A stretch of DNA of 64,000 nucleotides from Dendrobates tinctorius (Eukaryota): positions 19,096,001-19,160,000 of the forward strand of contig NW_027361795.1 of NCBI RefSeq assembly GCF_039654945.1, read 5' to 3'. Shown here piece after piece: positions 10,184-57,753 of the stretch. A program made the translations under genes and the position numbers. The stretch's first letter is position 1; each line of letters begins with the position of its first letter. Under the pieces are notes generated by a model. It had not been told where the DNA came from and did not search any database. It saw only the letters and a program-made list of their open reading frames with translations.

Positions 10184-10213
10184 ACAGACAGACAGATAGC
10201 CATATGGATAAGT

Positions 10214-10259
<46 letters not shown>

Positions 10260-10370
10260 AAGATAAATGTGAGACAGACAGATAGATAGATATGTGATAA
10301 GATAGATAGATATATGATAGAATAAAAAGTTATAGGTAGAATAGATAGATAAATAGATATGTCATACGAC

Positions 10371-17396: not shown

Positions 17397-17424
17397 CGCA
17401 AATGTGTGAGCAAAACGCTTTTCT

Positions 17425-28558: not shown

Positions 28559-29555
28559 TTAGTTACATTGTGCGTCGGGTCCCATGCACACCGGAGAGCC
28601 TGTGCATGAAGGCGCCACAGAAGCGGATGCAGTTCTTTTGATTTGGACATGGTGTGCCACTATATGATGCCCTATGCTGTATTACATCAATGAATCTAGG
28701 GAAGTAATATGAAATCTGACAGAGCGTGACACACTTTTTTCTGTGAGGTTTACATAGAAACCAACATAATAAACCTATCTGTATGTCTGTGTGAAACTGG
28801 AGCCATGTAGAGGTATAGTGTAGCCTTCCACAGGCTAAAGGTGCTGTGTTACGGCTTCATGAAGTGGTTGCACAGACCAGTAATATGCTTCTATTCATGA
28901 GCCCTTATTTTCTCTGCTCCGGCACATCACATGGCAACAAACCTTAGCATTAGTCACAATGATTTCACTGTATAAAATCTGTTTTCTACCATATCCATGT
29001 AAAATAGAAGAAGGTTAGATTTATGCTTATTACATTTTGGTCGTTTTTATCTCGACGCACTGAAACACACGTTATGGAGCCTGCAAAGAAGAAATGACAA
29101 GAGAGCAAAGTAAAACTTGCATTTTGAGGTTCAGACTATTCCATGCATTCAGATCAATAGAGTTTCCCCTGAGCCCAGTAAGGAATAGGTTACAAGAAGA
29201 AGAGCTCTGTGGTGCAAAATCTGTAGCCAAGAGATTAACTGAACGTTAGCACTGCTGTTCCTGATGGTTAATCTGAAATCATTTAATGCACAGTACTATT
29301 CATGCGGTTGGAGCCATTAACACACTGTGGAATACTTACTCGTCCTAATCACCAGAATAAGCAGTCAGTAGTAATCATAGAAAAAACACAATTTTAAAGC
29401 AATATTGTGTTTCAGTAAACCCTAAACAGAATGATCCTAATAATATTATTAACATTCCAGAATTGGCAATTTAAAAATACATGTCACCAAAAACACAGAA
29501 ATACCACAGAATCCACCGTTGATTCCAAAGCTTCTCTCTTCATGAAACAGGAAAA

Positions 29556-30655
29556 TCCCACCTAATAATGGTACCACCTAATAATAATACCACCTAATAA
29601 TATACCATCTAATAATAGTACCACCTAATAATAATACCACCTAATAATAATACCACCTAATAATGGTACCACCTAATAATAATACCACCTAATAATAAAC
29701 CATCTAATAATAGTACCACCTAATAATAATACCACCTAATAATAATACCACCTAATAATAACAACACCTAATAATAGTGCCACCTAATAATAGTACTGCC
29801 AAATAAAATGTCACCTAAGAGTACCACCTAATAATAGTACCATCTAAAAATATACCACCTACTAATAATACCACCTAATACTACCACCTAATAATGGTAC
29901 CACCTAAAAGTACCACCTAATATTAATAACACCTAATAATAGTACCACCTAATAGTACCACCTAATAATAATACCACCTAATAATATACCATCTAACAAT
30001 AGTACCACCTAATAATAATACCACCTAATAATAATACCACCTAATAATAGTACCACCGAATAATAATACCACCTAATAATAATAACACCTAATAATATAC
30101 CACTAATAATAGTGCCACCAAATAAAATGTCACCTAATAGTACCACCTAATAATAGTACCATTTAAAAATATACCACCTACTAATAATACCACCTAATAC
30201 TACCACCTAATAATAATGGCACCTAATAATGGTACCACCTAAAAGTACCACCTAATATTAATAACACCTAATAATAGTACCACCTAATAGTACCACCTAA
30301 TAATAATACCACCTAAAAATATACCAGCTAATAATAGTACCATCAAATAAATTGCCACCTAATAATACCACCTAATAATAATACCTAATAATATAACACC
30401 TAGTAATAGTACCACCTAATAAAATGCCACCTAATAATAGTATCACCTAATAAAATCTGACCTAATAGTACCATCTAATAGTACCACCTAATAAAATCCC
30501 ACCTAATAATAGTACCACCTAATAATAATACCACCTAATAATATATGGAACCTTTTTAATGGAAAAATAAAAGTTACATTTTATCCTACCATTGGACTGA
30601 TGGCTGGAGAAACAATACTATTTCCTAATAATATATTATCTAATAATAGTACCAC
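29556..30655. repeat. (TAATAATACCACC)-type minisatellite, continuing at 49406-49600 beyond the hAT insertion
   Basis: Same 13-16 bp unit on both sides of the 18.75-kb element. Confidence 0.95.
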
Positions 30656-31196
30656 TAGTGATGAGCGTGCACTAAAATGCTCAAGTGCTTGTTGCTCGGA
30701 TGGAGCAAATTGGAATACTCAGGTACTCGACCCGAGCAACAAGTCCAATGTTAGTCTATGGGAAATCCAAGCTTTTTCCCATGACCCCCCCCAGAGGTCT
30801 TTCTAGGGTATCAAAACGTCGGAAATGTATGGGGACAGTGCACAAAATACATGGGAACATCATGGGGAACACCCCTGGAAGCATTTCTAACTCCTAAGTC
30901 ACTGCTGTGACCAATGTTGTCAGAGTGTGACGCCACTTTTACAGGCACACAGTAAAACATACAAAAACAAAGCCAAAATGGATTTTACAGGGAAATATGT
31001 TAAGGGACTTCCTTTCCAGGGTAATAATTTGTGTGTAAGGCAAAAGAAATAACCCCCCCAAAAAAGTTCCCCCACCACTTTGGCTGTGTAGCATTTTTAT
31101 GCGTTTTTCAACATTACCACTGCTTTCAACCAATACTAATGCATTTACTGGGAAATGTCATTGTAGCATTTAACAACCTTAGCTGGCCATGTGGTG

Positions 31197-32440
31197 TAGA
31201 ATCATAGAATCGTAGAGTTGGAAGGGACCTCCTGGGCCATCTGGTCCAACCCCCTGCTCAAAGCAGGATTCGCTAAATCATCCCAGTCAGATGTCTGTCC
31301 AGCCTCTGTTTGAAGACTTGCATTGAAGGAAAACTCACCACTTCTCGTGGCAGCTTGTTCCACTCATTGATCACTCTAACTGTCAAAAACTTTTTTCTAA
31401 TATCTAATCTGTCTCCTCCCATTCAGTTTCATCCCATTGCTTCTAGTCTTTCCTTGTGCAAATGAGAATAAAGTTGATCCTTCTACAATGTGACAGCCCT
31501 TTAGATATTTGTAGACAACTATTAAGTCTCCTCTCAGTCTTCTCTTTTGCAAACTAAACAATCCCAAATCCTGTAACCTTTCCTCATAAGACAGGGTTTG
31601 CAGACCGGTCACCATTCTGGTTGCTCTTTTCTGAACTTGCTCCAGTTTGTTGATGTCTTTTTTAAAATGTGGTGCCCAAAACTGGACACAATATTCCAGA
31701 TGAGGTCTGACCAAAGAGGAGTTGAGGGAAATAATGACTTCACGTGATCTAGACTGTATGCTTCAGTTAATACATCCTAGAATTGCATTTGTCTTTTTTG
31801 CTGTTGCATCACACTGTTGACTAATATTCAGTCTGTGATCTAATAGTATACCCAAGTCTTTTTCACATGTGCTGTTGCTTAGGCCCTTTTCCTCCCATTC
31901 TGTATATGCTTTTTTCATTTTTATTGCCCAGATGTAGTACTTTGCATTTTTCCCTGTTAAAAACCATTCTGTTAGTTGCTGCCCACTTCTCCAGTTTATT
32001 TATATCTTTTTGAATCCTCTCTCTCTCTTCTCTAGCATTAGCTATCCCTCCTAGCTTTGTGTCATCAGCAAATTTAATCAGTTTACCCTCAATTCCTTCA
32101 TCTAAATCATTGATAAAGATGTTGAACAATACAGGGCCCAGGACAGAGCCCTGTGGTACCCCACTTGAGACATTCTTCCAACTGGATGTGCAGCCATTTA
32201 CGACCACTCTTTGGGTCCGATCACTAAGCCAGTTATGAATCCACCAAACAGTTGCCTTGTCCATTCCATACTTAGTCATTTTTTCAATAAGGATTGTATG
32301 AGATACTTTGTCAAATGCTTTGCTGAAGTCAAGATATACTATATCTACAGCATTTCCTTGATCCACCCAATCAGTGATTCCGTCATAGAAGGAAATTAAG
32401 TTAGTCTGACATGACTTATTAGTTACAAACCCATGCTGAC
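31197..32440 (-). mobile_element. 5'-truncated CR1 LINE (RT C-terminal half plus 3' tail)
   Basis: [44 protein letters not shown]; TAGAATCA tail repeats at 31197. Confidence 0.93.
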
Positions 32441-32459
32441 TTATAATATTCCAATTATA

Positions 32460-33050
32460 AGAAAGTAGGTCTCCCATAGTGTTTGCCTATGCAATAAATG
32501 CAAGGCCTGCCCTGCCACAAAGTCACATGCACCCCAATAAGCCTTTGAACCTATGACCTGGAAGGCCACAGGAAAACAAAGCTCACCTTTTTCTTTTGGT
32601 ACTGCCATACTGTTAGCCTATGCATTGAATACACGACCTTCCCTAATGCACCCTAAACAGCCTTTGAATGGCCACAGGAAAGCCAAGTTCACATTATACA
32701 TTTTGTTCTTCCATACTGTTAGCCTGTGCATTGAATGAAAGGCATGCCTTGCCACAAAGTTACACGCACCTTGATAACCCTTTGAAATGACGTACTGGTT
32801 GGCCACAGGAAAACCAAATTTACATTATTGTTTTGGTACTGCCATACTGGTAGCCTATGCATTGAATACAAGGCCCGCCTTGCCCCGAAGTTACATGCAC
32901 CACAATAAGCCTTTGAAATGACGTACTGGATGGCCACATGAAATGAAAGTTCCTATTATTACTTTTTTTTACTACCATAAAGTGTGTCCATGAAGTGAAT
33001 GCAAGGCCTAGCCCACATTTGCACGCACCACAATCTCCCTTGGAATTTAA
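32460..33050. repeat. Diverged ~131-bp tandem repeat inside the hAT
   Basis: (G/T)CCATACTG(T/G)TAGCCT.TGCATTGAAT recurs at ~32600, 32705 and 32836, degenerate at ~32968. Confidence 0.8.
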
Positions 33051-33278
33051 GTGTAGGAGGGCCTCATAAAAAAAGGTCTCATTACAAAGGAGCAGGTCTC
33101 CTATACTTGGAATGCCCACACCCTAAGTATATGGGCTGACAAACATTTCCCCCTGGGGGGTACACATCAACATAGTGTGTAAACTTTTTTTTTTTTACTG
33201 GCATCATAAACACCCTGGAAAACAGGAACGTGGTTTCCTACAGTTGCTGCTGGGAAGGTGCAGGTTTTTAGCAAAAAT

Positions 33279-34563
33279 ATGGTGGACGAGTTGTTGGATG
33301 AAGTGATCAGGAAAAGAGACATGGTGACGGCAGGAATGGGACCATACAGGATTAATAATGGCGGTGGTTATGGGAGGTATGAGATCCAGGATACAGCCTA
33401 CAATGATTAGTCATTTATTCGCCCGCCACCAATTACCAGAATGCATTTCATGCCTGTCAGAAAATCCGAGTAACAGATGCGCATCTGAAGCTCTGCATAA
33501 AATATTCCAGTAAGAAAAATGTTGTCCGTATAAAGGGCAAAGGGCAAAGTGCAACATGCTCGTGAGATGCTGAATTATACAAAGCAGATCAGCGTTTGAG
33601 GAAAACCAAACAAACTGATGGATGCTCGTGAAAAACTAAGTTTAAAGAGTAGTGCACCGGCCGAAACTATCAACACACCCGTGGCTCAAGGTTCGTCATC
33701 TTCGCCTATACATATTACCAATAATATTCAAATGTCACAGCTGATAAATATTTGTTCCAGTGTAACAAACACTGTTAAAGGAATGCCAATAAACGTAGTT
33801 AACCACAAACATAGGAAACAACTGATTTCCTCTTTACAAGATATGGACGATTTTGGTATTGATGACGACTTGGAACTTTAATACAACCCCATCAAGAAGA
33901 TGAAGATCACAGCTGCAAACAAAGTTCAAAAAAGGCCGTGATTGTCTGAAAATTCATTTTCTCTTGGGCAGAATTTACCTCTTACTAAAGTGTTACAGAA
34001 TGATGCATACACAGCTCCAAATCTACTCAGCTCGACACTTTGCCAATCGCCACCGTTATTGCACGCAAATGCAGTAACCAATGGGTCACTGACACTTGTC
34101 ACAAAGGAGGCCAGTTCATCAGTAGGGCCCCACTCATAAAGAGTCTGTCTTTAGCTCTTTAGAAGGCACAAAAATTACCATTAATAATTTGCATCCAAGA
34201 GTTACAGAGGAAGATAGCGTGGAGCTTTTCTGTGCATGCGGTGCCTTTGAAGTGCACCTGCTTGTTGCGTTCCAGAGTTGCAGAGGTTGTGTTTGTAAGA
34301 AAGGAAGATGCAATTGGTGCCTACAAAAATACAACAACAGAAACCTAGATGGACAACCAATGAAATGCAATTTTCTTTCGAATGGTAGTGTGATAACATC
34401 AGACTAGCCCATACTTCTAAGATTAATTGACACCCCATCAAAGAAGGAAAGTTATTGTCGAAGAAACACAAACTCCTCCTCCAGTGCTGCTTAAAATCCT
34501 CCAGCTAAAGTTGATCCTGATACTATCTTAAAAGCACTCTTTAAATCCTCAGGGTCATCAGCA
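33279..34563 (+). pseudogene. poldip3: Intronless POLDIP3 (SKAR/PDIP46) copy, near full-length CDS with stops and frameshifts
   Basis: Colinear peptides match recalled vertebrate POLDIP3: MVDELLDEVIRKR (MADISLDELIRKR), VQHAREMLN, DAREKLSLK, GMPINVVN, LPLTKVLQNDAYTAP, RRM LEGTKITINNLHPRVTEEDSVELFCACGA, KYNNRNLDGQPMKCN, PAKVDPDTILKALFKSSG. Confidence 0.92.
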
Positions 34564-35093
34564 ATGATTTTTAAACAGCAGACAAAAAGGCAGCAACACT
34601 TACCTGCCCTGATTTTGGAACAAATGACCTACAGAGTGCAGCCAGCCCATAAAGCAAGATGTTAGCAACACAGGTGCAAAATACCAGATCAGCAGCCACT
34701 CTCCACCTACCCATTCCTGGAGGGGGTGACTGCATAGTACACAATTGCACAATAAAGGCCTGCATAGGGTATTGTTCACATAAGGGTACTGCATAGTGTC
34801 TGGATCACAGCCCATTAGTCACGCCCCTACTTTCCGATTAGGCGGGCTGGCCAGAGAAATGCTGGGAGGACATAGATTGTGGTTTTCTATCAACTTCATC
34901 TGCATTTTAAAATTTTTACGTAATGCTGGTAATTAAACAAAAGGTACTCTAGTGTTGACAGGGCGCAGTGCCATACCACAACTATCTATTTGCTCTTCCT
35001 GTACAACCCTATAATTTTTTAATAATTGATATTTAGTTGTACTCCTCATTGAGAGGGAGGACACACAAGAAGCGATAGGTGAACTCTGCTGAG

Positions 35094-35544
35094 TATAGTT
35101 GAGCGAAACAGGTCGGCCAGATTCATAAGTCGCCAACTTATGGCAAAGTCGGGTTTCGCCGACCGAAACCCAACCACAACGTGAAGTCGGCCATGCGGTC
35201 AGCAAAACGAGCGCCAAAGTCGGATTTCCCAGAATGCTTGCATGTGACTTTTTTCAGCCACTGAGCAAGGACGTACACTGTGGGCAACGAGATGACATGT
35301 GCAGCGTTCGGGGAGAGAGAGAGATTTTGCGCACTTTAAAAAAGCGGTCTGGCATGTAGGTGTGTTTACTGTCCTCCACTCCCTGACGACTTTGCTTCCC
35401 TATTGACTTGCATTGGGTTTCGTGTTTCAGTCGGACCTTCGACTTTTCCCGATAGTCGGCCAATTTAGTTCGACTCGACTTTTGAGAAAGTCGGGTTTCA
35501 TGAAACCCGACTAGATCCTAAAAAGGCAAAGTTGCTCATCTCTT
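35094..35544 (+). mobile_element. 451-bp non-autonomous hAT (MITE) related to the element ending at 7753
   Basis: Ends TATAGTTGAGCG / GCTCATCTCTT; 6/8 TSD match CTGCTGAG/CAACTGAG; subterminal sequence resembles the reverse complement of 7620-7753. Confidence 0.8.
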
Positions 35545-36174
35545 CAACTGAGACTACAAATATCCCTTTGCAAACAATAACGTGGCTGTTGCATCACGGA
35601 ACACGTTCACCCTGGTGTTCTAGAAATGGTGTCTGAAGAGATGTGGAGGATGTGTGGTATCTCACTAAGAAGCCATTTCTATGGAATACTGTATATATTG
35701 TGTGTTTTCATATAAATGCTCTCCATTTTTATGTGGACTGGGAATTTTAAATACATTGTGAGACCTGCTGACAGGCAACACAAAAAGGGATAATCCTCTC
35801 CTCCCAGGCTTTATCAGGTAACCCAGCTCTGCTTTAAAATGCATAAAGTATCAGGCCTACATCAAATTTTTTTGGTTGTGTCTTAGCCTAGTTATTCACA
35901 CAATTTTTCTGGCCCAAAAATAACACAATACAAGTAAGATATTTGAGCGTGGCCTGTTTCCAACAGAATCCTCATCTATCTATGTGCTAAAAATTGTGGC
36001 ATTTGAGTCCTCCATTGAACTGTTTTTCCTGTCTCTTACTAAAGTTATTGACAACAGTTTTATGACAAAAAAATTTTTGGACTATAGGCCAGATATTTTA
36101 AACTGTGGGTGTCACACACAGATAACATATAAGTTCGCTAAAAATTCTGCCATTTGGAGTGAACATGGAAAATA

Positions 36175-39100
36175 ATGTAGTACATTTAAAAGGGGCAAGG
36201 CATGTGGCCAGGGACGGGGAAGTGGACATGATGGTGATGGTGCATGCAGAGGCTGAGGCTGTTGGCAAGCTGAAATTAGGCCACAACAAACACCCACATT
36301 TTCTCGTTCGACCTTCCTATCACAATTGCTAGGGGAATGCATCAGCACACCGAGTATTGAACCCACAGCAGTATCAAAAGGTTGTTGGTTGGATAATGGA
36401 TAATGATTCCAGTCACTTTGCCACCACCAGTCACTTTGCCACCACCACCAGCACCCTATCTTCCACACGGTCAAGTCTGAGTAGCCGTGGGTCTGGACCG
36501 CATATTCCTCACCCTGATCCTCCTTCCTCCCACCATGCCGATTGCCTGTAGACAACTGATCCCACACTTGGACACTACCAAGAGCTGTTCACTTTAACAT
36601 TTATAGATTTGGGACTCTCATGCGGTACACTTGAAGCTGGGCAAGATGATATCGCATAGTGCTGCCCAAATATTTGAGCAGCCACGGTCACAAAGGGCCA
36701 GTGATGGAAATGTGTCACAAGAGGTGGGCGATGATGAAGAAAGTCAGGAGGAGGACCAGGGTGCGGAAGTGGAAAATGAGGTGGTGGGTGATATTATTAT
36801 TAGTCATTTTTATAGCGCCATTTATTTTATGGCGCTTTACATGTGAAAAAGGGCAGACATAGACAAGTACACTAAACATGAGCAATATAAGGCACACGCA
36901 AGTATAGAAGGAGAGAGGACTCTTCCCACGAGGGCTCACAGTCTACAGAGAATGAGTGTGTATACAATAGGAGAGGGTAGAGCTGGTCATGTGGTTCAGT
37001 AAACTGAGAATCACTGCAGGTTGTAGGCTTGTTGGAAGATGTTGTTCTTCAGGTTTGTTTTGAATGTGTCCGTGGAAGGTGGTAGTCTGATGTGTTGGGG
37101 TAGAGAGTTACAGAATATGGGTGAAGCACGGGAGAAGTCCTGTATGCGGTTGGGGGAAGAAGAGATAAGAGGGGAGTAGAGAAGAAGATGTTGAGAGGAT
37201 CAAAGGTTGCGTGTAGGTAAGTCCAGGGAGACAATGTCACAGATTTATGTGGGAGACAGGTTGTGGATGGCTTTGTATGTCATAGTTTTAGGGTTTAGCG
37301 AGGAGAGGCTGGGGAATAAAGGGAACACAGGTGGATTAGTCAGGCAGCATAGTTTAGGATAGATTGGAGTGGTGCAAGAGTGCTATAGGGGAGGCCAGAG
37401 AGTAGAATGTTGCAATAGTCGAGGCGGGAGATGATGGGGGTGTGCAAAATCATATGTGCAGTTTCTTGATCAAGGAATGTAAGGATGTGGGAAATGTTTT
37501 TGAGTTGGAGTCGGCAGGAGGAGGCAAGGGCTTGGATATGTGACTTGAAAGAGCGGGCAGAGTAGAGGATCACCGCGAGACACTGCTTATGCGGGACTGG
37601 GGAAAGTGATCAGCCATTAACATTGACGGTTAGTTCTGGTGGAGGGGTACAGTGAGATGGTTGAAAGATGATGAATTCTATTTTGTCCATGTTCACTTTT
37701 AGAAAATGAGCAGAAAATAAGGAGGATATAGGGGACAGACATTGTGTGATTTTGGTAAGTAAGGAGGTGATGTCAGGTCGAGATAGGTAGATATGCGTGT
37801 CATCGGCGTAGAGATGATATTGCAAACCGTGGGATTCTATTAGTTGTCCCAGGCCGAAGGTGGAGATGGAGAAGCGTAGGGGGGCCTAGAACTGAGCCTT
37901 GGGGAACCCCGAAACACAGGGGGTGAGGTGAGGAGGTGGTATGGGAGAGGGCGACACTGAATGTCCCCTTAACACCAACACTACGGAAGTTGCCAGTACA
38001 ACTGCTAGGTGTTCCCAAGTCTGGTGATTTTTTAAAAACTCTACCAATAACCTCAAAAAGGCCATTTTCATCACCGGCCTTGCCAGCATCAGCAGGGGTA
38101 GAGAAAAGTCCAGCCTGTCCATCACCAGCATGATCAGGCACGTGGCAGCAAAGCACCCGACTTTGTGGGCCAAACACCAGGCTCCAGGAACAGTGTCTGT
38201 GGGTGATACCACTGTTTCTTTTGCTGTTGTGCGTGCAAGCAAATACACTATCCATGGTGCATGCAAAGATGCCTCCTGCCCTGCATCTGTCATTGCACAC
38301 AAACTCAAATAGCACCATCAACAAGCACGTCCACATCCTTGTCCAGCGCAGCGTTCAGTTGTCCATACCCCAGTCCTTGGAGCGCAAGCGGAAATATTCA
38401 GTCAAAGCCCCAAAGAACACAGTAATAAATTCACACATTTCTCTTCTGCTTGCACTCGAAATGTTGCCTTTTAGCCTCGTGAAGATGGAGCTTTCTGCAA
38501 CCTGATTTTGGCATCCATCTAAAAAAAGGACTATGTCCCCAGCTGCCACTATTTCTCCCGGTGTACCTTCACGGCATTACACAAGAACGTGTCCCACTAC
38601 ATTACTCATGCCATCAACCATGCTAATACTGGGAAAGTCCACTTAATCACAGACACGTGGACAAGTGCTTGTGGGAAGGGATGGTACATCTCGCTGATGG
38701 CACACTGGGTTAACATAGTAGAAGCCGCGACCCAGACAGACCTTGGAATGGAACACATCCTCCCGATGCTGAGAATTGCGGGCCCTATGTCAATCAGGGT
38801 TGACCCCCAAAATCTACAGCTCTTGCACCTCCTCTTCAGCCTCAATCAAGCATCAACAGGCTGTACTGAAGCTAATATGCTTAGGTGACAAACCGCACAA
38901 TGCTGAAGAATTGTGGACAGCTCTGAAAGAGCAGGTAGATCTGTGGCTGACACTGCTGAACCTATAGCCAGGCATTGTCATGTGTGACAATAGCCAGAAC
39001 CTGGTGGCGGCTCTGAGGTGAGGCGAGCTCACACACATACCATGCCTGGCCCATGTACTTAACCTGATTGTTCAACGGTTTCTCAAATGCGACCTGGAGC

Positions 39101-40197
39101 TGCCGGATCTGCTTGTGAAAGTATGCCAGCATGCGTACCCATTTTAGAAAGTCAGCTGCAGCTTCATTCACCCTTTCATTCACACCAACTGGTGTGTGAT
39201 GTGCCCAAGCTTTGGAACTCTACAGTGCACATGTTGTGAGCAGAAGAGGGCAGTTGTTGACTCATCAATGCCGTCGGTATTCAGTTCAGACTTTACAAAT
39301 AAGATCTCAGGAGTGGACATGGATGTCAGACATATGTAACATCCTCCAAAACTTTGAGGAATCCACCAAGATGGTGAGAGTCTATGACGCCATAATTAGC
39401 GTCACCATCCCTCTTCTTTGTGTTCTAATAATACTAGTAATCATTATTTATTTAGCGCAAATAATACAATAATTAAATCAAAAGATAATGACCCTGCTCA
39501 TGAGAGCTTGGAATCTACAATGAGGTGGGGGAGATACAAAGTACAGGGGTGTATTTACAATGATGTATTTACAATGATAGTGCAGAGGTTAGTCAAAAGT
39601 CGGGGATGGCATGAGGACAAGGAGGAGGAGGAGATCATGGTCAGTTGTCCTCTTGGTGAGGGCATGGAAGTCTTGCCTGTTAGCAGTCTGGCATGCATTG
39701 GTTGAGTTTATGTTACACTGCCTTTCCCGTGACCCTCGCATTCTAGAAATTTTGGCTGACAGCCAGGCAATACTGATTGGTGACACTTTTAGACACACGC
39801 TAATAGGCGAACTTGATATCTCTTATTCCAGGGGCAGACTGGTGTACAAAAATATTGCAGTAACAGAGGGCCCTTCTTGCAGAATTATTTAAAAAATTCT
39901 CATCTCAAAATGCTTGCAGCAGAGGTCATAGTTTATTGGACAACCAAAGAGTACAGGTGAGAGAGACAAAACTCCAATCCAGCATAGGCAGTGTAAGACT
40001 GTCAAAGTTATGGGAGAGTTTTCTCAGACCCTCCCATCGCCCAGGACCTGAGGCACGGGGTACTCTTATAAGGAGTGCAAAGTTTTGGAATATGCTGAGG
40101 AAATATCTTGCTAATTGTACCAATGTCCTTCGACATTACTCTGTGCCTTATAATTATTGGGTATCCACGCTGGAAATGTAGCATGAATTGGCTCTCT
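36175..40197 (+). pseudogene. Decayed hAT transposase of the large element, interrupted by L2 and truncated in the C-terminal dimerisation domain
   Basis: G/R-rich start; QKVVGWIMDN; BED remnant; LALEMLPFSLV; GKVHLITDTWTSACGKGWYISLMAHWVN; CDNSQNLVAAL; HIPCLAHVLNLIVQRFL; KLWESFLRP..PYNYWVSTLE. Confidence 0.9.
36793..37964 (-). mobile_element. 5'-truncated L2-clade LINE
   Basis: [40 protein letters not shown]; L2-type 3' tail with (AAT)n at 36793. Confidence 0.88.
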
Positions 40198-40779
40198 GTA
40201 CTGTGCACGTGCGCTGTGCTCACGGTCACGGAGCACACAGCACCTCGCTCTCTGGCGGTCACTGGGCACACAGCACCTCACTCTGGCAGTACCGCTTGCA
40301 GCGGCGGGAGCTGATGGGAACAGTCCTTCGCGGCGCCAGTGCTCTAAGGACGGAACACGCTGCTCAGCGTTCTACGCTCTTCTTGCCCCTGCAAAAAAAC
40401 TCTGCTGTCATGCCCATTTTCTCTTAGGCTTGCCCCCCTGCTTCTAGGTCACTGGGTCTGTCTGGTGCAGTCCATCGCAGTGTCGGCACTTCGGGTGCGT
40501 AATGCGCTGACAGCGGGGGACTCACTCCTGCATTGCGCTTTTTTTTCCATCAGCTTCCAGCCAGGTTCCCTGTCTAAAGATACCCCCTCTTCCTGAGTAA
40601 GAAGACCTGTCCGTTCCCCTATTCCTTCCCCCAGTAAACAGGGGATGCAGCCTTGACAGTTCCGGACCTGGCGCAGCACAGGTAACGGAGCCCGGTCTTC
40701 CTGAGTCTGTACATATTTGGCCAATCAGTTCTTTAATGCAAGCACCATAGAAGGCATGTTCTAATATTCGCAAGCAAAT

Positions 40780-41798
40780 TGTACACAAAGGAGGACAGTT
40801 TGCAACTACAGACAGATTTGAGTAAATTGGAGAATTGGTAGAAAAATGACAAATGAGGTTTAACACAGATAAGTGTAAGGTTACGTACATGGGAAGGAGA
40901 AATAGATGCTACAATTACTTACTAAATGGGAAACTGCTGGGGAAATCAGACATGGAAAAAGACTTAGGCATCTTAGTCAATAAGAAGCTAAATTGGAGTG
41001 CCCAGTGTCAGGCAGCTGCCACCAAAGCAAATAGGGTCATGGGATGCATTAGTAGAGGTCTGGGGACACGAGATGAAAACATAATTCTCCCTCTGTACAA
41101 ATCACTCGTCAGACCACACTTGGAGTATTGTGTGCAATTTTGGACACCGGTGCTCAAGAAAGACATTACTGAACTTGAAAGGGTTCAAAGGCGGGCTACT
41201 AAAATGATAAATGGAGTTGGTTCACTACAATACCCAGAAAGGGTATCAAAATTAGGTCTATTTACTCTAGAAAAGAGAAGACTTAGGGGAGACTTAATAT
41301 ATATGTACAAGTATATCAGAGGGCAATACAGAGATCTCTCCAATGAACTGTTTGTACCAAGGACTGTGACAAGAACAAGGGGGCATTCTCTTCGCTTGGA
41401 GGAAAGACAATTTCTGCACCAGCATAGAAGAGGGTTCTTCACGATAAGAGCAGTGAGGCTCTGGAATTCTCTTCCTGAGGAAGTGGTGATGGCCAACTCA
41501 CTGAATGAATTTAAGAAAGGAATGGATGCTTTTTTTGTGAATAACAGTATAGAAGGTTACGAATAACAGAATATTCTAGGTAGATGGTTGACCCAGCTTA
41601 GGGGAAGGAATTTTTTTCCCTATGGAGAAAATTGGCTTCTACTCTGTGGGTTTTTTGCCTTCCCCAGGATCAACAATGCACTAAATTGCACTAAATTGCA
41701 CTAAATGCACAGCTGCACTAAAAATAGGCTGAACTAGATGGACATAAGGTCTTCCTTCAGCCTTCAAAACTATGTTACTACGTATGTTACTATGTTAC
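40780..41798 (+). mobile_element. 5'-truncated CR1 LINE, second family
   Basis: ORF 40853-41566 [38 protein letters not shown]; 3' tail (TATGTTAC)n at 41771-41798. Confidence 0.93.
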
Positions 41799-43530
41799 GA
41801 GCAGTTTCACTTTGAAGGACTTTGTGGCTCACATCAATCCACAAGTTGATATTAGTCTCATACTTCAAAATTACGGTGGTAAATCCGTGCCACATAGCTT
41901 GTGTATGTTCTGACTTCTGTAACATCATTTGGGTGATGATTATTCATACCTATTTGCTTCATAAATAATATATTCATCATCTTCTTCAATGCTTCGGAAT
42001 ATAATGTTGTAAAAGTGAAAGCAAGTTGGCGAAGTGTGTGGCAACAATGTAATACCACGGCCACCGGGGGATAGCTGTTCCATCTCCAATATGCTGTTCA
42101 GTTGAGACTCAAATAACTGCAGACAGAGGCTGGAAGCAACTTAAACAGTTCAACTTTATTCTCTTCAGGGCACAGCACGTCCACAACGGATTCAGGACTC
42201 TTTACACGGTACCAGCAATACATCTTCATCTACAGCAGCACTCTACTTCCTCTTTTGTTACACACGGTTTGAACACACAAACAAGTGAGCACGCCACACG
42301 GAACACGGTGAGCACGGCACTTGGACCACTCTTCCTGCGACCGACTTCAGCCCACGAAGGTACCTGTCTACTCCTTTATAGCTCACCCCTTTAAGGCACT
42401 GTTGCTCCTGCACATCTCTTAGGCTTGTGGCTCACTAGACTCTTAACACAGCTCCTGCATTCCAGCTGTCACTTCCACAGGGGGCTCACCCACTGACCTC
42501 CCTGGCTTGAGCAATTCCAGACATGGGCTGGTTTCCACAGACTGACTTGGCTGTCACTTCAGCTCTCCGCTATTAGCTAACTTGACTTCAGAAGCTCTTC
42601 CCTTGGCCTCCCTAGTTCTTCAGCTCCCTGTTTCCAGGTGAAGGAACCCCAGTGATCCTGCTCACTGGCTGCTGCTGTAGGCACAACACTGCACTTCACT
42701 GCTCCGAATAGCTGAGAGACTCTACTACATTTCATGTCTCAATCAGCCACGCTTAACAGGACTTCTGCCTCCTCTCCAGTACTTGAGGCTACCCCCGGCT
42801 ACTCTGAACTAGAGCAGGAAATCTATCTAATTTTTGCTCCCGGCTAGTTATGCTTAGTGCCCCCATCTAGTGTCCATTTTCTAATACTACACTTATCTCT
42901 GAATATCTACCTAACTAATGCAATGTGGCCACAAATACACACATACACATGAAATACATACTGCACACAGGTCTTCACTATTTCTACATTGCGTGTGCGG
43001 CTAACCACCTCATTGATCTTATTTAGTTTCTTTGGCAAGAAAAGAACAGCTCCATCTAAACCACGCACTTTTCCTATTAATTCATCATGCTGGTAAAGTA
43101 GAGGTGAGATTAGGGATCTAGATAAAATCTGTGGACTGTAGTCAATATGGCACTGTGACAAGACCCACTGGGGTCTAGCTATCAATTTGACATGGTTTGT
43201 GCACAGCTGAATAGAGTTGCAAGCAAAACCAGATTTTGATTCAATAACATGTTGGATGGATTGTCTAGTGGAAACACCCATATCATAGAAGTCACATCTT
43301 CGACCACCACACTCTCCAATTGACACATCTTGAAATCCAGCTGAAATGTCAAAATCTCTAACTTCTGTTGTAGAAACTGCAGGGGCTCCTTTTTGACGTT
43401 TTTGTCCAACAAATTCAGTATTAGTAGGTGATGGATTGTCATAATCCGGCCCAGAAACAACAGGCTACGGTAGTTTTGAGTCCTGGCCCCATGCTCTTCC
43501 ATGTGCTCTTGCTCTGGATCTTACAGTCAT
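41799..43530 (-). pseudogene. piwil1: Intronless PIWIL1-like copy: RA/RG N-terminus, N domain and L1 up to the start of PAZ; split by an LTR-like insertion, 3' part lost
   Basis: ATG 43530 MTVRSRARAHGRAWGQD (cf. MTGRARARARGRARGQE); GGRRCDFYDMGVSTRQSIQHVIESKSG..TNHVKLIARPQWVLSQCHIDYSP..LLYQHDELIG..DGAVLFLPKKL..SRTRN; resumes ~42046 [52 protein letters not shown]. Confidence 0.93.
42048..42968 (-). mobile_element. LTR-like insertion within the piwi copy
   Basis: Begins TGTAATACC exactly where PIWI homology breaks; AATAAA (~42154) and TATAAA (~42374) on the minus strand; no TSD found and a few PIWI codons are missing at the junction. Confidence 0.55.
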
Positions 43531-43729
43531 AATTTAATCTAGAAGATTTCACCTTCATTATCCAAAGCCAGAGTACAACACTGCCCAAGCGTTCACCCTC
43601 TGCTTCTCAGACTTTCTATCTGCACAGTAACTTCCTCTAGGCAGAAGATGATGATGGTAGTAGTATTTGGTGCATTTAACACACAGTCATGAAGCAGCCT
43701 TAACAATTTGAAACAGAAGTATTTTTACA

Positions 43730-44830
43730 AAGATACTAAACTGTTCAATATGTGGCCTGTATTTTTGTTTTTGACAGCAAAATAGTGTTTAGAACTAGGG
43801 TAAGACACAGCAAAAACAGTTGAATGGAGCCCTAAAATGCCACATTTTGTATACCATAGATACATGAGGTGTGTCACAGAGATACCACACTGTAGAATAT
43901 GTGGCCAGTATTTATATTTTTGACAGAAAAATAGGGTATAGAAATAGGGTAACACACAGCAAACAAAAAGGTCATGGAGGCCTGAAATGCCACAATTTGT
44001 AGGCCACAGATAGATCTGGCATTTGACGGAGATACCAGACTGTTCAATATGTAGCCTGTATTTTTAAATGTTGTACCCCAAAATAGTGTATAGAAATAGA
44101 GTCACAGACAGCAAATACAGTGGAATGTAGCCCTCAAATGCCACAATTTGTAGGTCACAGATAGATCTGGCATTTGACGGAGATAACAGACTGTTCAATA
44201 TGTGGCATGTATTTTTAAATTTTGTACCCCAAAATAGTGTATAGAAATAGGGTAACAGACAGCAAATACAGTGGAATGTAGCCCTGAAATGCCACAATTT
44301 GTAGGCCACAGATAGATCTGGTGTTTGACAGAGATAGCACACTGTTAAATATGTGGTTTAAATTTTGTACCCCAAAATAGTGTATAGAAATAGGGTCACA
44401 GACAGCAAATACAGTGGAATGTAGCCCTGAAATGCCACAATTTGCAGGCCACAGATAGATCTGGCGTTTGACGGAGATACCAGACTGTTTAATATGCGGC
44501 CTGTATTTTTAAATTTTGTATCCCAAAATAGTGTATAGAAATAGGGTCACAGACAGCAAATACAGTGGAATGTAGCCCTGAAATGCCACAATTTGCATGC
44601 CACAGATAGATATGGCGTTTGACGGAGATACCAGACTGTTTAATATGCGGCCTGTATTTTTAAATTTTGTACCCCAAAATAGTGTATAGAAATAGTATCA
44701 CAGACAGCAAATACAGTGGAATGTAGCCCTGAAATGCCACAATTTGCAGGCCACAGATAGATCTGGCGTTTGACGGAGATAGCACACTATTAAATGTGTG
44801 GGCTGTATTTTTTCGCTTTTGGCCACCAAA
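43730..44830. repeat. 151-bp tandem repeat (~7 copies) upstream of the piwi copy
   Basis: AAATAGTGTATAGAAATAG at 44081, 44232, 44375, 44526 and 44677, plus diverged outer copies. Confidence 0.93.
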
Positions 44831-44941
44831 ATTGTGTCAATAAGTAGGTTATGACACTACAAAAAAAATTCTTTGGATGACTAAAATTGTAAAATATTTA
44901 GCTCAATGATATGTGATTCGGACAAAACACAGTGTTAAATA

Positions 44942-45783
44942 CCGTATATACTTGTGTATAAGCCAAGACTTTCAGCACTTTTTTGTGCTGAAAACACCCC
45001 CCTCGACTTATACACAAGTCAGACATCAATACTCACCCTCTGTCGCTGGATCTCCATCCCTGCATCTCCATTGTCCGGCGCTGGCAGCTTCTTCCTGTGC
45101 AGAGCGGTCACGTGGTACCGCTCATTAAGGTAATGAATATGCACGCATCTTCACTCCCATAGGCGTGGAGTTCATATTCATTACCATGTGACTGCACTGC
45201 ACAGGAAGAAGCTGCTAGCCCTGGACAACGGAGAAGCAAGGAAGTGCAGAGACCGTGCCAGGAGGGAGTGAGTATGACAGGGATCCGAGCTGAGCCGAGC
45301 CATGCATATAAGGGGGAGTACGGGGGAGCCATACATACACGGGGTAATACGGGGGGAGCCATGCATACATAGTAGAGAACAAGGGAGTACGAGGGACCCA
45401 TGCATACAAGGGGGAGTACGGGGGAGCCATGCATACAAGGGGGAGTACGGGGGAGCCAGGCATACACGGGAGAGTACGGGGGAGCCATGCACACACATGG
45501 AGGGCAGGGGAGCCATGCATACAAGGGGAGTACGGGGGAGTCATGCATACAAGGGGGAGGACGGGGGAGCCATGCATGCACAGGGGAGGACACCTGCCAT
45601 GCATACAAGAGGGAGGACGGGGGAGCCATGCATACAACAGGGGGAGGCACACATAGCAGGACAGGGATGAGGGGACAATGCATACCCAGCTTATACTCGA
45701 GTCAATAAGCTTACCCAGTTCTCTGTGGCAAAATTAGGTGCCTCGGCTTATACTTGGGTCGGCTTATACTCGAGTATATACGG
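44942..45783. mobile_element. TA-flanked Tc1/pogo-type MITE with internal ~29-bp GC-rich minisatellite (45300-45650)
   Basis: TIR CCGTATATACT(T/C)G.GTATAAGCC at both ends; TA flanks; unit GGGGGAGCCATGCATACAAGGGGGAGTAC. Confidence 0.85.
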
Positions 45784-45857
45784 TATATGAACTGTAGCTA
45801 AATATTTTTTGGGCAGCTAAATATTTTTTGGCCAGCTAAATATTTGTTTACCACCTA

Positions 45858-47491
<1,634 letters not shown>

Positions 47492-48350
47492 TAAATGTTT
47501 TTTTGGCAGCTAAATATTTTTGGAGCAGCTAAATATTTTTTTGGCAGATACATTTTTTTTACAGCAAAATGGTATACAAAATCTTTATAAGATACTCCAA
47601 AAAATGTTACAGTACCACAAAAAATGCCAGAATTTTCTGCGCACTCAGATGTGATGCTTGGGACAGGCAAAGCCGTTATAATTGCTGGATTTTCACGCTA
47701 TAGTATTAAAAGGATCTGGCTGTAGTCTGCAGTGTCAACAACCAAATAGAGAAAAAAAGGGGTCTGGATTGCTTTGGAATAAAATAATCGGAATTAAGGT
47801 GCCAAAAAAAATTATTTCTAGCCACTGATACCTGGAGCTAGGTATATATGTAATAGGCAGCAGCAGCAACAGACAGTATACCCTTTTGATGTATGCAATG
47901 ATGTATGCAATGATATCTATATACCCACATACAGTGCCTGCATGCCATGCACTGATGTGTATATACGCACATACACGCCCTGCCCACCTAGCACTGCAAT
48001 CTATATACCCCGTAATTAGTCCTTAGAAGGACTGTTTATTTAGCTGGATTTGTGTATTCTATGATGGTATGTCCACACTAACTAATAAAAAGGAGGATGA
48101 ATGAACTCATGGAGATCAACATCCGACACTGCGGAGACACCATCATGTGTTTCTCAACGCAGTGATTCTTGAGCACTGCCCCCATCCCTTATGGGAAATA
48201 TGTAAAACATGCAAAACAGAAGCCGCGGAGACACCATCACGTGTTTCTCAACGCAAGCAATGACCAGCCAGGTCTTTGCCCGGGAAGGAACAACCACGGG
48301 AAGGGCAGTCTCCAATGAAGGCAACCACCTATGCCAAAACATGTTATCCA

Positions 48351-48394
48351 TCCACATACAGCTGTTTCGGGGTATTGCCCCTCATCAGTGTGGA
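48351..48394 (-). ncRNA. Type I hammerhead ribozyme, intact core
   Basis: UCCACA-CUGAUGA-GGGG caaua CCCC-GAAAC-agcu-GUA-UGUGGA: stem I, conserved core, stem II, short palindromic stem III, NUH triplet GUA. Confidence 0.85.
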
Positions 48395-48702
48395 GTAGGA
48401 AACTGGCTGGTAGGAGTAATGCCTAGTAAAAAGACTATGAAGAGGAGGATGAATGAAGTCATGGAGATCAAAATCCGACACTGCGGAGACACCATCACGT
48501 GTTTCTCAACGCAGTGATTCTAGAGCACTGCCCCCATCCCTTATGGGAAATATGTAAAACATGCAAAACAGAAGCCGCGGAGACTCCATCACGTGTTTCT
48601 CAACGCAAGCAATGACCAGCCAGGTCTTTGCCCGGGAAGGAACAACCACGGGAAGGGCAGTCTCCAATGAAGGAAACCACCTATGCCAAAACATGGCATC
48701 CA

Positions 48703-48746
48703 TCCACATACAGCTGTTTCTGGGTATTGCCCCTCATCAGTGTGGA
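48703..48746 (-). ncRNA. Hammerhead ribozyme copy 2, with a C>A change at the base of stem II
   Basis: Same motif but CCCA-GAAAC. Confidence 0.72.
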
Positions 48747-48865
48747 GTAGGAAACTGGCTGGTAGGAGCAATGCCTAGTAAAAAGACTATGAAGAGGAGG
48801 ATGAATGAACTCATGGAGATCATAGTCTTTTTACTAGGCATTGCTCCTACCAGCCAGTTTCCTAC

Positions 48866-48909
48866 TCCACACTGATGAGGGGCAATACCCAGAAACAGCT
48901 GTATGTGGA
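48866..48909 (+). ncRNA. Hammerhead ribozyme copy 3 (inverted unit), with the same C>A change
   Basis: TCCACA CTGATGA GGGGCAATACCCA GAAAC AGCT GTA TGTGGA. Confidence 0.72.
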
Positions 48910-50179
48910 TGGATACCATGTTTTGGCATAGGTGGTTTCCTTCATTGGAGACTGCCCTTCCCGTGGTTGTTCCTTCCCGGGCAAAGACCTGGCTGGTCAT
49001 TGCTTGCGTTGAGAAACACGTGATGGTGTCTCCGCGGCTTCTGTTTTGCATGACTAACTAATAAAAGCACAAATCTGTCCCTATCTCAGCAACAGCTCTC
49101 CCTACACTGTCTATTTCCGGACGTGACTGTGACGAGCAGGGTGGAGGCAGGTCTCTAATAGACCTGATGTCGCTGTGCGGCCAGCCAATCACTGTAATAC
49201 CACATCAAAGATGGCTACAGCATTACAGTGCGTGGCAGACAATCCCTGCATGTTGCTTGGCGCGCTAAAGAATGCCAAAATTGCAGGGCAGAGACTGGAG
49301 CTCCCGCCGAATAATCCATGAAATGCTCGGTGCTCACCGAGTACTGCCAGTATAGCGATACTCAGGCAAGTACCGAGTAGTGGCGAGCATGTTCGCTCAT
49401 CACTAAGTACCACGTAATAAAATGCCACCTAATAATAGTACCACTTAATAATACCACCTAATAATAATACCCCCAATAATATACCACCTAATAATAATAC
49501 CACCTAATTAAATGCCATTTAATGATAATATCACCTAAAAATAGTACCACCTAATAAAATGCCACCTACTAATAGCACCACCTAATAAAATGCCATCTAA
49601 AAACAGATATAATCTGATATATTTTGGCATTTATCTTTTCATTTGTATTTCAATAAAGATTAGTAATGACATAATTGAATGATTAGTCTAACCTAAGTGG
49701 CTGAGAGTGCTTTGTTCTGTGTGATGTCTGACCATCTCCCAAAGGCCCACCATGCATCTTCTCTTTCTAGATCTTTTATGTATACAATATACTATAGAAG
49801 TGCAACTTGAGCAGAATTTATGTGTCCATATTTGTAATGGATAGCCCACTGAAACAAGATAAATAACTGTCATCTGTTTTTTCTGTGAACCATCAGTATG
49901 AATGAGGCCTCGGTGTCTCATAGAAAATATCAAATAAATTAATTAGGCCCCTTTCAGATGCTTCTATGCACCCAAAACTAAAAGTTCTGACACTCCCATT
50001 CCATTTGGTTTCCACCACATTCTCCACTTCTTTGTTTATTAACCTCGCAATGAAGAAAAACACATCCCTGTTCTGGTTTTCACCACCCATTAAAATGGCG
50101 ATAAGGCCATTTCAGAATGGATGCCTCTTTTCAGATTCCAAAATAGAAGCCACAAGGGGTAAACATGCTAGATCTTAAA

Positions 50180-53652: not shown

Positions 53653-56600
53653 CTATATACAATATCTAAGGGGTGGTATACCTTGTGTGGTCCGGGTAGA
53701 CCTGCGTAAGACTGGTGTAGTGGCTAATGTACTGGATACACTACTGGGGGTTCTATGTAACACAGGGATACTAGACTGACTGTGACCTCTTAGACTCACC
53801 AGGGGCACAACAGGTTCACCACTGGCAGGGCGAGGGTTCTTTGGCTCCACTGCTGGTGTGGCATCTGCTACCTGATTTTCCTGATTCTCTTGAGTCACAT
53901 CTTCCTGTGCTACCAATTGGGGAAACAGCAACACTGGCACCACTATAGCATCGTTCACTTTAGTCCAATTCGCAGGGAATTCTCCAAGCACTGTGCTGAC
54001 CTTCTCTTCTTCCACCATGGGTTGGATGTTATCTGGTTCTTCTTTCCTTCCCTTCAACTGGTCAGGACACAACTTCAAATGATCTCTCGATACCGCTGCT
54101 GAGGTCTCTGCTCCATCTTTACTCACAAGGCATACCTTAGTATTATCAAAGTTCAAGGGCAGAATGGTATAAGGTTCAGCTTCCCATTGATCATCCAACT
54201 TGTGCAATCTTCTCTTCCTTTTCAGGACTGGCTCCCCCGGTGACAAAGGAACATCAGGTGCATTTTGATTGTAAAGCTTCTCCTGCTTTTGCCCTGCCTG
54301 AGCCAGACTCCTTTCCACGCATTCTTGAACTCTCCGGTACTGTTGCTTCCTCTCCGTGTCCCAATCAGCATCTGGGGACGCTACTTCAGGCATCAGGACT
54401 CCCATGTCTAAGTCAATAGGCAGTTTACCAGGTCTGGCTCTCATTAAATAGGCTGGGGTACAGTTGGTGGAGTTCACTGGGATATGGTTGTAGAGGTCCA
54501 CCAGATTGGGCAACTTCTCTGGCCACAGATTCCTCTCCTCCAAGGGCAAAGTCTTCAGGAGGTCAATCACTACCTGGTTCATCTTCTCGCACATGCCATT
54601 GGTCTGTGGGTGATACGGTGTTGTCCGGATCTTCTTACAACCATACAGGTTACAGAATTCTTGGAACACTTCTGCCTCGAAAGCTGGACCTTGATCTGTC
54701 ACCACTCTTTCAGGATACCCATGTGGTCTACAGAAGTGCTGTTGGAATGCACTGGCTGCTGTCCTTGCAGTTTGATCTTTGACAGGCACAACTACCAGGA
54801 ATCTTGAGTAGTGGTCCACAATGGTAAGTGCATAGATCTAGCCTGAGCGGCTTGGAACCAGCTTCACATGGTCCAGGGTTACCAACTCAAGGGGCTGCTT
54901 GGTGATGATTGGCTGTAGAGGAGCTCTCTGGCTGTCCTGATCCTTTCTGCGCAGGTTACATTGTCCACACTCCCGGCACCACCTCTCAATGGCTTTCCTC
55001 ATACCAGCCCAGTGGAACCTCTCTCGGAGCAATACTTCCAACTTCTTCCATCCGAAGTGTCCAGCTCCATTGTGGTATGCTTCTAGGACCATTGATGCCT
55101 CTCTCTTTGGGACTATCACCTGCCAAACCAGCTCATGAGTGCAGACATTGATACTCCTCCGACACAGCTTCCCTTCATAAATGAACAGCCGGCCTCTCTC
55201 CTTCCACAACTGCTGAGTTTCTTCAGGAGCATTCGACTCTGGACGGGAGTCAGCTCGTGTCAGCAGCTCCTTCACCAGGCGGACTGCAGGGTCACTATCT
55301 TGCGTTTCTGCCCAGTCATGATGGGGCAATGGGTTCAGGGTGACCTCCTTCAAGCCAGACTGTCTGTTTCTCACTCCTTGAGCACGCTGGGCCACAAGTG
55401 GCCGGTGGAAAGGAGGTAGTTCTATCTCTTCAAGAGCCTCAGGGTCTTCTCCGGCATCTGGTAGGTTAGGCATTCTGGACAGTGCATCAGCATTTGCATT
55501 CTTGTGCCCTGCCCGATACTTGATGGTAAACTCATATTCGATAGCCGAGCCATCCATCTCTGTTCCAGTGCACCTAGTTTTTCAGTGTCTAAATGCGTCA
55601 ACGGGTTGTTGTCCATGAAGATAGTGAACTTGGCAGAGACTAGGTAATGCTTGAACCTTTCAGTGACAGCCCAGACTGTGGCAAGGAACTCCAGCTTGAA
55701 AGAACTGTAATTGTCAGGGTTCCTTTCCGTGGGGCGCAGCTTCCTGTTGGCATAGGAGATCAGTCTTTCTTTCCCATTCTGTACCTGCGACAGTACTGCT
55801 CCTAGTCCCACGTTGCTGGCATCTGTGTACAGCACAAAGGGTTTGTCATAATCTGGGTAGGCCAGAACTTCGTCTCCTGTGAGAGCCATCTTCAATCGGG
55901 TGAAGGACGTTTCCAACTCTTCAGTCCACTCAAAGGTGGAATTTTTCTGTTTGGTCTTCTTGGACTGCCCCACCAGGAGATTTTGCATAGGGGTGGCTAT
56001 TTCAGTAAAGCCCTTGATGAATCTTCGGTAGTAGCCTACCAGTCCAAGGAATTGGCGTACTTCATGAAGGTTGCTGGGTTTTGGCCAGTCCCGGATGACT
56101 GTAACCTTGTCAGGATCTGGTGCCACACCTTCTGCACTGACCACATGACCGAGGTACTGCACCTTGGGCTTCAGGAGGTGGCACTTGGAGGGCTTCACCT
56201 TCAGGCCAAAATTGGACAAAGCTTCAAACACTTCAGCCAGGTGCTCCAGATGATCTTCATAGGTTTTGGAGAAAACAATGACATCATCCAGGTACAGCAG
56301 GACCGTCTCAAAGTTCATGTGTCCCAGGCAGCACTCCATCAGCCGTTGAAATGTTCCTGGAGCAGTGCAGAGCCCAAATGGCATATAATTGAACTCACAG
56401 AGACCCATTGGAGTGGTAAATGCTGTTTTCTCCTTGTCTGCCTCTGCCACGGGAACCTGCCAATACCCACTAGTGAGATCCAAGGTGGAAAAGTAATTAG
56501 CAGTTTTAAGTGCAGCTAATGATTCCTCAATTCTAGGTAATGGGTAGGCATCTTTATGTGTAATGCTGTTAATTTTCCTGTAATCAACACACATTCTCAT

Positions 56601-57718: not shown

Positions 57719-57753
57719 ATACTTGGCTCTCCAGTTCTTTGGGCCTGGGGATC

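Follow-up and report, generated by a model that had tools for sequence, protein, structure and literature searches.

A 64,000-nucleotide stretch of the genome of the frog Dendrobates tinctorius (assembly GCF_039654945.1, contig NW_027361795.1, positions 19,096,001 to 19,160,000 of the forward strand; hereafter the window, in whose coordinates all positions are given) holds a large DNA transposon of the hAT type at 30656-49405, within which lie intronless copies of two host genes, PIWIL1 and POLDIP3. Probably, a large hAT subfamily captured cDNA-like pieces of host genes before it amplified, and these pieces are passive, transduplicated cargo. The first piece would comprise the 5′ untranslated region (5′ UTR) and approximately the first 313 codons of PIWIL1, placed in antisense just downstream of the transposase and inside the right-hand 151-bp array; the second would very probably be the whole coding sequence (CDS) of POLDIP3, in the left arm. 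The two would then have spread as passengers by cut-and-paste transposition, reaching the order of hundreds of copies in several related frog species. The copy in the window would be one old insertion into a minisatellite, later hit by CR1, Tc1, miniature inverted-repeat transposable element (MITE) and other insertions, and its own divergence since insertion may be put roughly at 5-6%.

The 18,750 bp from 30656 to 49405 form a single hAT-type insertion sitting in a 16-bp host minisatellite, which was delimited by repeat detection at 29554-30655 and 49406-49620. The element begins and ends with a perfect 12-bp terminal inverted repeat (TIR), TAGTGATGAGCG, placed by exact-match search at 30656-30667 on the forward strand and at 49394-49405 on the reverse strand; these are the only two exact occurrences in the 64 kb, where 0.14 would be expected by chance. 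The TIR is short, as in hAT elements, its start (5′-TAGTG) agrees with their YARNG pattern, and a subterminal motif, GTACTCG...CCGAGCA, is found alike at the left and right ends. The flanking sequence carries the 8-bp target-site duplication (TSD) of a hAT element, AGTACCAC, at 30648-30655 and 49406-49413. Since AGTACCAC is part of the minisatellite unit and recurs 16 times in the 1,104 bp to the left and three times in the 215 bp to the right, such a match would arise by chance with a probability of approximately 1.4%, not 1/65,536; the duplication is thus weaker evidence than it would be in unique DNA, but still informative. When the element and one copy of the TSD are deleted in silico, the minisatellite becomes continuous and keeps its register. 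The TIR count, the TSD and the restored empty site bear out the initial annotation of this DNA, made from the sequence alone, in which matched TIRs and an 8-bp duplication were held to bound one 18.75-kb insertion in a minisatellite. Arm-to-arm similarity beyond the TIRs, such as a composite of two 5′ ends would have, was sought by blastn within the element and none was found.

Between 36126 and 40430, on the forward strand, lies a decayed hAT-like transposase, recognised by motifs read in translation and by a feature match in the Atlas. The motifs are a BED-like piece (38028-38309), LITDTWTS (38523-38885), CLAHVLNL (39022-39144) and the start of hATC near 40150, and the frame that holds them is disrupted by many stop codons, frameshifts and a nested reverse transcriptase (RT) fragment. 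The language-model features of the Atlas match the ZBED1 RNase-like and DUF659 clusters at 0.92-0.93, and all ten of the best named matches agree. Searches with the transposase pieces in Pfam, PDB and for homologues gave no significant match, and an Atlas search with the C-terminal piece was uninformative. The abundance of the region was assessed with contigs of sequencing runs from organisms A, B and C (X1, X5 and X6, respectively) and of an RNA-labelled run of organism E (X16), which were placed on 38301-44300 when they were at least 85% identical to the window. Over the transposase, summed depth reaches 7,500-116,000, and each site has approximately 100 variants among the contigs of three species, as befits a dispersed, multi-copy hAT family. 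One bin, 39501-39700, stands far above its neighbours (116,000-315,000 in the DNA runs and 15,000 in the RNA-labelled run), and reads are apparently cut at 39608-39635; the transposase remnant may include here either a tract of low complexity or a short repeat of very high abundance.

The PIWIL1 fragment occupies 40711-43530 on the reverse strand, with its ATG at 43530, and corresponds to residues ~1-313 of the protein. It is identified by Pfam (Piwi_N, E=1.1e-07), by PDB (PIWIL1, 9s0z_B, residues 83-204, E=1.2e-35) and by tblastn with the PIWIL1 proteins of a snake (Vipera, P0013) and a frog (Hyperolius, P0012). In the tblastn map, residues 5-200 fall at 43524-42964, residues 206-224 at 42044-41988 and residues 247-283 at 41913-41803, with a weak continuation of residues 288-313 at 40788-40711. 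The fragment contains the arginine-glycine (RG)-rich N-terminus, the N domain, the L1 linker and the first residues of PAZ; its 5′ end is complete and the 3′ two-thirds of the gene are absent. The identity and the strand that the initial annotation gave to this remnant therefore stand, but the extent has to be reduced to the N-terminal third. Before the ATG, a 5′ UTR-like leader of approximately 190 bp (43531-43722, reverse strand) runs up to the 151-bp array, and beyond the 3′ end there is a flank at 40501-40710 on the same strand, where an organism C contig lies at 40606-40762; leader and flank both have the depth of the coding fragment.

Several features indicate that this is a processed copy, and a dead one. 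Residues 5-200 are contiguous in 561 bp and, thus, intronless, while in PIWIL1 genes found in Logan contigs, which served as an exon control, residues 68-112, 110-183, 183-228 and 214-252 lie on separate exons, with splits at approximately residues 111, 183 and 228. The loci of this control (L001-L005) had been considered as copies of the transposable element (TE) and were rejected, as they are real intron-containing PIWIL1 genes of other taxa. In the window, a stop codon occurs 21 codons past the ATG, and the frame is further broken by several frameshifts, a CR1 element and an 820-bp insert. The edges of the fragment have no poly(A) tail, TSD or TIRs of their own; a run of eight A at 40541-40548 (reverse strand) lies approximately 160 bp beyond the end of PIWIL1. 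A homologous-protein search with the PIWI open reading frame (ORF) and a transposase piece came back empty, its length window and word index being such that TE fragments are missed, and a search for related loci on metagenome contigs gave 159 pattern matches with none confirmed. In a representative library, 252 short Piwi_N matches were set aside, since most of them resemble real PIWIL1 more than the window copy and were not assignable to the family.

The fragment is not confined to this locus. Over 42901-43700, summed word depth is 3,088-4,233 in X1, 5,062-7,699 in X5 and 5,359-10,264 in X6, single listed contigs having a depth of 4-10, and 30-59 distinct contigs per variant site bear a letter other than that of the window. 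Depth is even across 40501-43700. The contigs listed over the fragment are 85-92% identical to the window and full-length across the exon junctions, so that they come from other processed copies and not from the host gene. Moreover, both flanks are common to contigs of other species: an organism B contig (43660-43825, 90% identity) bridges the junction of the 5′ UTR with the 151-bp array, and the organism C contig at 40606-40762 spans the 3′ truncation point. Independent retropositions would not share a truncation point and flanks, which argues that the PIWIL1 unit was amplified at the DNA level within something larger. The contigs point to dozens of distinct variants and probably to hundreds of copies. 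A loose end at 40684 in organism C was examined as a further junction and rejected, as it is a diverged homologous continuation.

The other copies also tell how the window copy has changed. At four positions the majority letters would change its translation from L to F (43057), V to A (43067), H to Y (43194) and H to Y (41938), all toward PIWIL1, and the window copy has consequently decayed on its own from a common PIWIL1-derived ancestor. The CR1 element at 40787-41801 is missing from other copies, in which the joints 40748>41802 and 40765>41805 are found; the letters that bridge the latter encode ILDVMYNL, which is VLDFMYTL in PIWIL1. The fragment is covered by the RNA-labelled run of organism E as well. 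In the initial annotation, the finding that the cargo junctions occur at this locus only was named as the outcome that would reduce both genes to ordinary retrocopies. For PIWIL1 this outcome is excluded.

These observations bear directly on the proposal that two ordinary retrocopies, made by long interspersed nuclear elements (LINEs), fell by chance into one dead hAT copy at this locus alone, a view for which little room is left and which we regard as very improbable. Both copies are intronless, as it predicts, and retrocopies typically derive from genes expressed in the germline. Nevertheless, at least three species have many copies of the PIWIL1 fragment with flanks in common, and the fragment has a complete 5′ end and a truncated 3′ end, whereas products of target-primed reverse transcription show the reverse pattern. 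Of the marks of a processed retrocopy, then, only the lack of introns is present; a 3′ poly(A) tail and a TSD of its own are missing from either copy, and 3′-completeness is missing from PIWIL1. Taken together, the intact 5′ and truncated 3′ ends, the shared flanks and the lack of a tail and a TSD speak against a LINE-mediated landing in the window copy and suit the capture of a transcript or an earlier retrocopy by an ancestral element, and the initial statement that two retrocopies had landed in the element is not sustained.

What then carried the unit? Three points favour the hAT as the vehicle: the cargo lies between the TIRs, its junction is shared with a repeat of the backbone, and it has no ends of its own. 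The backbone repeat is the 151-bp array at 43723-44869 (reverse strand; 7.2-7.6 units by repeat detection, depth 12,000-60,000), of which approximately 1.7 units were found by blastn at 35851-36108 on the forward strand. The array thus also precedes the transposase, in inverted orientation, and hence belongs to the hAT backbone. PIWIL1 and POLDIP3 are both host sequences between the TIRs of 30656-49405, as in transduplication, and for PIWIL1 the same cargo junctions recur in many members. Capture would have taken place by template switching or filler-DNA synthesis during gap repair, on a transcript or on a pre-existing retrocopy. Template-switch capture during gap repair is established for the filler DNA of Ac/Ds. 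The cargo would have had no selected function beyond supplying PIWIL1-antisense sequence to pools of TE-derived small RNA.

Some facts weigh against this account of a cargo-bearing hAT subfamily. The assignment of the transposase combines a feature match with reading and carries no E-value. Summed contig depth is not copy number, and the PIWIL1 unit falls short of most of the transposase region by a factor of 3-30 in depth, from which it follows that only a subset of the related elements carries the unit. In addition, depth falls to 870-1,936 at 40301-40500, so the junction of the unit on the transposase side is one that we infer. TIRs, transposase, PIWIL1 and POLDIP3 are known together from this one element.

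The same facts can be read in another way, namely that the PIWIL1 unit (~40500-43722) is a separate repeat that inserted in this hAT, either as a piece of another non-autonomous element or as a locally duplicated block, and that POLDIP3 is an unrelated single retrocopy. Depth steps at both edges of the unit, the dip at 40301-40500, the single element in which TIRs and cargo are joined and the indirect nature of the POLDIP3 family evidence, which consists of shares of 31-mers, are all in keeping with it. By contrast, neither TIRs nor a TSD nor a poly(A) tail mark the edges of the unit, a 90%-identical contig of another species crosses the same junction with the 151-bp array, and two independent rare events within 10 kb are again needed. 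We consider this alternative unlikely, if less so than the chance landing of two retrocopies.

The second piece of candidate cargo, an intronless POLDIP3 copy, lies in the left arm of the element at 33199-34569 on the forward strand. It has a putative 5′ UTR, a methionine codon near 33261 and an end, ...DPDTILKALFKSSG, near 34563. Window positions 34126-34404 match PDIP3/POLDIP3 proteins (E=1.3e-22), and in tblastn residues 3-141 of P0001, the C-terminal ~140 residues, are contiguous at 34147-34569 with 65% identity, in support of the copy that had been reported here on the plus strand. By frame reading, the whole CDS lies within 1.3 kb (33261-34563), with several frameshifts; its N-terminal part, recognised by reading against the human protein, is presumed. 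No poly(A) tail and no TSD of its own were seen at the edges of the copy, and an Atlas search with the POLDIP3 piece was uninformative. The transposase, PIWIL1 and POLDIP3 regions are all dead, in keeping with the initial annotation, by which this copy is non-functional.

Whether POLDIP3 was carried by the family was approached through the share of sampled 31-mers present in runs, a stretch over POLDIP3 (33150-34900) being compared with one over PIWIL1 (41700-43800). In organism A the shares are 0.33-0.39 for POLDIP3 and 0.36-0.45 for PIWIL1; in organism B, 0.15 and 0.19; in organism C, 0.15-0.18 and 0.10; and in organism D, 0.14-0.16 and 0.09. Organism F has 0.12-0.13 for POLDIP3, PIWIL1 being not listed. 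Organism C lacks approximately 45% of the PIWIL1 stretch, and when the share is normalised to the part that is present, both stretches agree. A share of ~0.17 equals (1-d)^31 at a divergence d of ~5.5%. The POLDIP3 and PIWIL1 stretches would thus be consensus-like family sequence viewed through one private divergence of the window copy. Furthermore, the annotation of Ranitomeya imitator includes two decayed and essentially intronless POLDIP3-like models (P0007 and P0009) on different contigs. On the other side, the k-mer share of POLDIP3 could stem from orthologous loci or from exons of the host POLDIP3. On balance, these shares and models make it rather likely that POLDIP3 belongs to the same family unit. 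Thus, the earlier suggestion of cargo borne by a family holds for PIWIL1, which recurs with the same flanks in organisms A, B and C; for POLDIP3 it is no more than probable.

A further question is whether the cargo was kept for a purpose. The subfamily could have retained the PIWIL1 fragment because it weakens silencing by PIWI-interacting RNAs (piRNAs), with POLDIP3 aiding mRNA export. The effect would come about either through sense-strand piRNAs or transcripts of the element, which pair with piwil1 mRNA so that it is sliced, or through a truncated PIWI peptide, N-terminal and RG-rich, that titrates Tudor partners. The source gene is a core effector of the piRNA pathway (PIWIL1, E=1.2e-35), the fragment is family-wide in several species, and the 5′ end of the mRNA and the start codon are retained. 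The fragment is, besides, antisense to the transposase and convergent with it. Element-sense transcripts, such as those of read-through, and element-sense piRNAs would accordingly be complementary to piwil1 mRNA. Contigs of the RNA-labelled run X16 cover the fragment, and a precedent exists in Drosophila, where TART-A holds a fragment of nxf2 (PMC7785250).

Other observations count against such counter-defence. Between regions, depth in X16 varies in the same proportions as in the DNA runs, and RNA-labelled runs may contain DNA. With a stop 21 codons after the ATG in the window and with degenerate RG motifs and internal deletions in P0020, a PIWIL1-N-like model of R. imitator, selection at the protein level is not visible. 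Every copy seen is broken, and as copies differ by ~8-15% from one another, the burst is old. POLDIP3 is not a silencing gene and has, to our knowledge, no established role in TE silencing, so that the argument from theme, by which the two genes formed a set of RNA-silencing cargo, is not supported. We accordingly regard retention of the cargo for counter-defence as doubtful, slightly more so than a separately inserted repeat. Somewhat fainter still is the prospect that the cargo supplies or supplied anti-piwil1 piRNAs or a decoy N-terminal PIWI peptide and would be a vertebrate counterpart, by analogy, of TART-A and nxf2; were it so, the hAT family might have helped the expansion of TEs in these large-genome frogs. 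It is plausible, under passive carriage, that the cargo yields PIWIL1-antisense small RNA as a by-product.

DNA transposons that capture genes are well known from plants and fungi. In plants, what Pack elements take up is usually genomic DNA that retains its introns. The frog cargo differs from theirs in being cDNA-like and in that transposase remnants are still in the element; what it has in common with Pack-MULE and Pack-TYPE elements (PMC8903248) is that fragments of host genes lie between the TIRs of non-autonomous or composite DNA transposons and are spread along with them. Closer in kind is a hAT with an intronless histone H3 sequence that is present in hundreds of copies in Pseudocercospora fijiensis and related fungi (Dhillon et al. 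2019, PMC6710886). As in the frog, a hAT there carries an intronless host coding sequence, derived from a transcript or a retrocopy, and has many decayed copies across related genomes. However, the fungal hosts have repeat-induced point mutation (RIP) and the cargo is a housekeeping histone (PMC6710886), whereas in the frog, a vertebrate, it is the 5′ third of a piRNA effector, PIWIL1, together with what is probably POLDIP3, and the copies have decayed through ordinary mutation and nested insertions.

The Drosophila case resembles the frog element in another respect. TART-A holds a captured nxf2 fragment, for which antisense piRNAs and an effect on nxf2 expression have been demonstrated (Ellison, Kagda & Cao 2020, PMC7785250). 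In both, a TE bears a fragment of a piRNA-pathway gene, so that piRNAs of the element can be antisense to a host transcript. Yet TART-A is a telomeric non-LTR (long terminal repeat) retrotransposon whose piRNAs have been shown, while the frog vehicle is a DNA transposon with old, dead copies, known from DNA sequence. With processed pseudogenes made by LINEs, the frog cargo has in common that it consists of intronless copies of germline-expressed host genes, but it differs from them by the lack of poly(A) and TSD, by PIWIL1 being truncated at the 3′ and not the 5′ end, and by flanks that are shared rather than new at each copy. In a full-text literature search, neither gene capture by vertebrate hATs nor PIWI-fragment cargo was reported, and in a search that included genome work on poison frogs, no vertebrate transposon was described as carrying PIWI or POLDIP3.

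A multi-copy PIWIL1 fragment in a transposon family puts PIWIL1-homologous sequence into loci that feed piRNA production, and the idea of a TE that turns the piRNA pathway on its own effector is directly testable with gonadal small-RNA data of these frogs. An inert cargo would still leave the family of interest in two ways, as a marker by which hAT activity can be dated and as the origin of spurious 'piwi-like' and 'POLDIP3-like' models, for instance in the annotation of R. imitator. In that genome (GCA_958301615.1), P0020 has 202 amino acids and a Piwi_N domain and spans 672 bp. Two Piwi-domain ORFs of intronless size lie 6.7 kb downstream of it, and the locus looks like a fuller processed copy of PIWIL1. 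The variant CFHFYNIIF is common to P0020 and the window copy, where the PIWIL1 of Hyperolius has CFQFYNIIF.

The hAT has itself been the target of many insertions, and matches to CR1, RT and Tc1 confirm the younger nested elements that had been subtracted from it in the initial annotation. From the left, these are a CR1-like LINE fragment at 31195-32470 on the reverse strand (RVT_1 at 31863-32477, E=5.9e-27); at 35060-35540, a MITE-like element that is 75% similar in self-comparison to 7539-7754; and, inside the transposase, the RT fragment at about 36850-38000 on the reverse strand, confirmed by domain search near 37340-37950. Repeat detection also places 131-bp tandem repeats at 32470-33120, with a T13 run behind them at 33185-33198. 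A further CR1-like LINE (about 40787-41801, forward strand) lies within the PIWIL1 fragment. The ~820-bp insert within the same fragment (42140-42960) is present in organisms A and B, where it is multi-copy (depth 500-7,400); in organism C it is nearly absent, a contig there joining 42037>42996 past the insert, whose depth in X6 is 20-116. This insert looks like a younger, lineage-restricted repeat.

The right arm holds further units. Self-comparison delimits a small inverted-repeat element of ~850 bp at 44939-45786, with 26-nt inverted repeats that are 92% complementary. Within it lie a 29-bp tandem array rich in G (45297-45637) and, on both strands, long ORFs that overlap; it is probably another nested non-autonomous element. 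Next to it, at 45856-47493 on the reverse strand, is a Tc1/mariner element with 138-nt TIRs (96% complementary) and an HTH_Tnp_Tc3_2 domain (E=2.5e-13). Finally, 352-bp repeats at 48085-49052 form a near-perfect palindrome, with 233-nt arms that are 98-99% complementary and a 27-nt spacer, and contain three near-identical ORFs of 102-104 amino acids.

The surroundings of the hAT are dense in TEs, and no ordinary host gene was recognised in the 64 kb; an Rfam search of the window gave no match. A run of 227 N at 10713-10939 is an assembly gap or a masked stretch. Three groups of long ORFs, of the Ty3/Gypsy LTR retrotransposon type and with RVT_1, RNase H, integrase, chromo and gag domains, lie outside the element, at 229-2736 on the forward strand and at 14121-18176 and 53653-58797 on the reverse strand.

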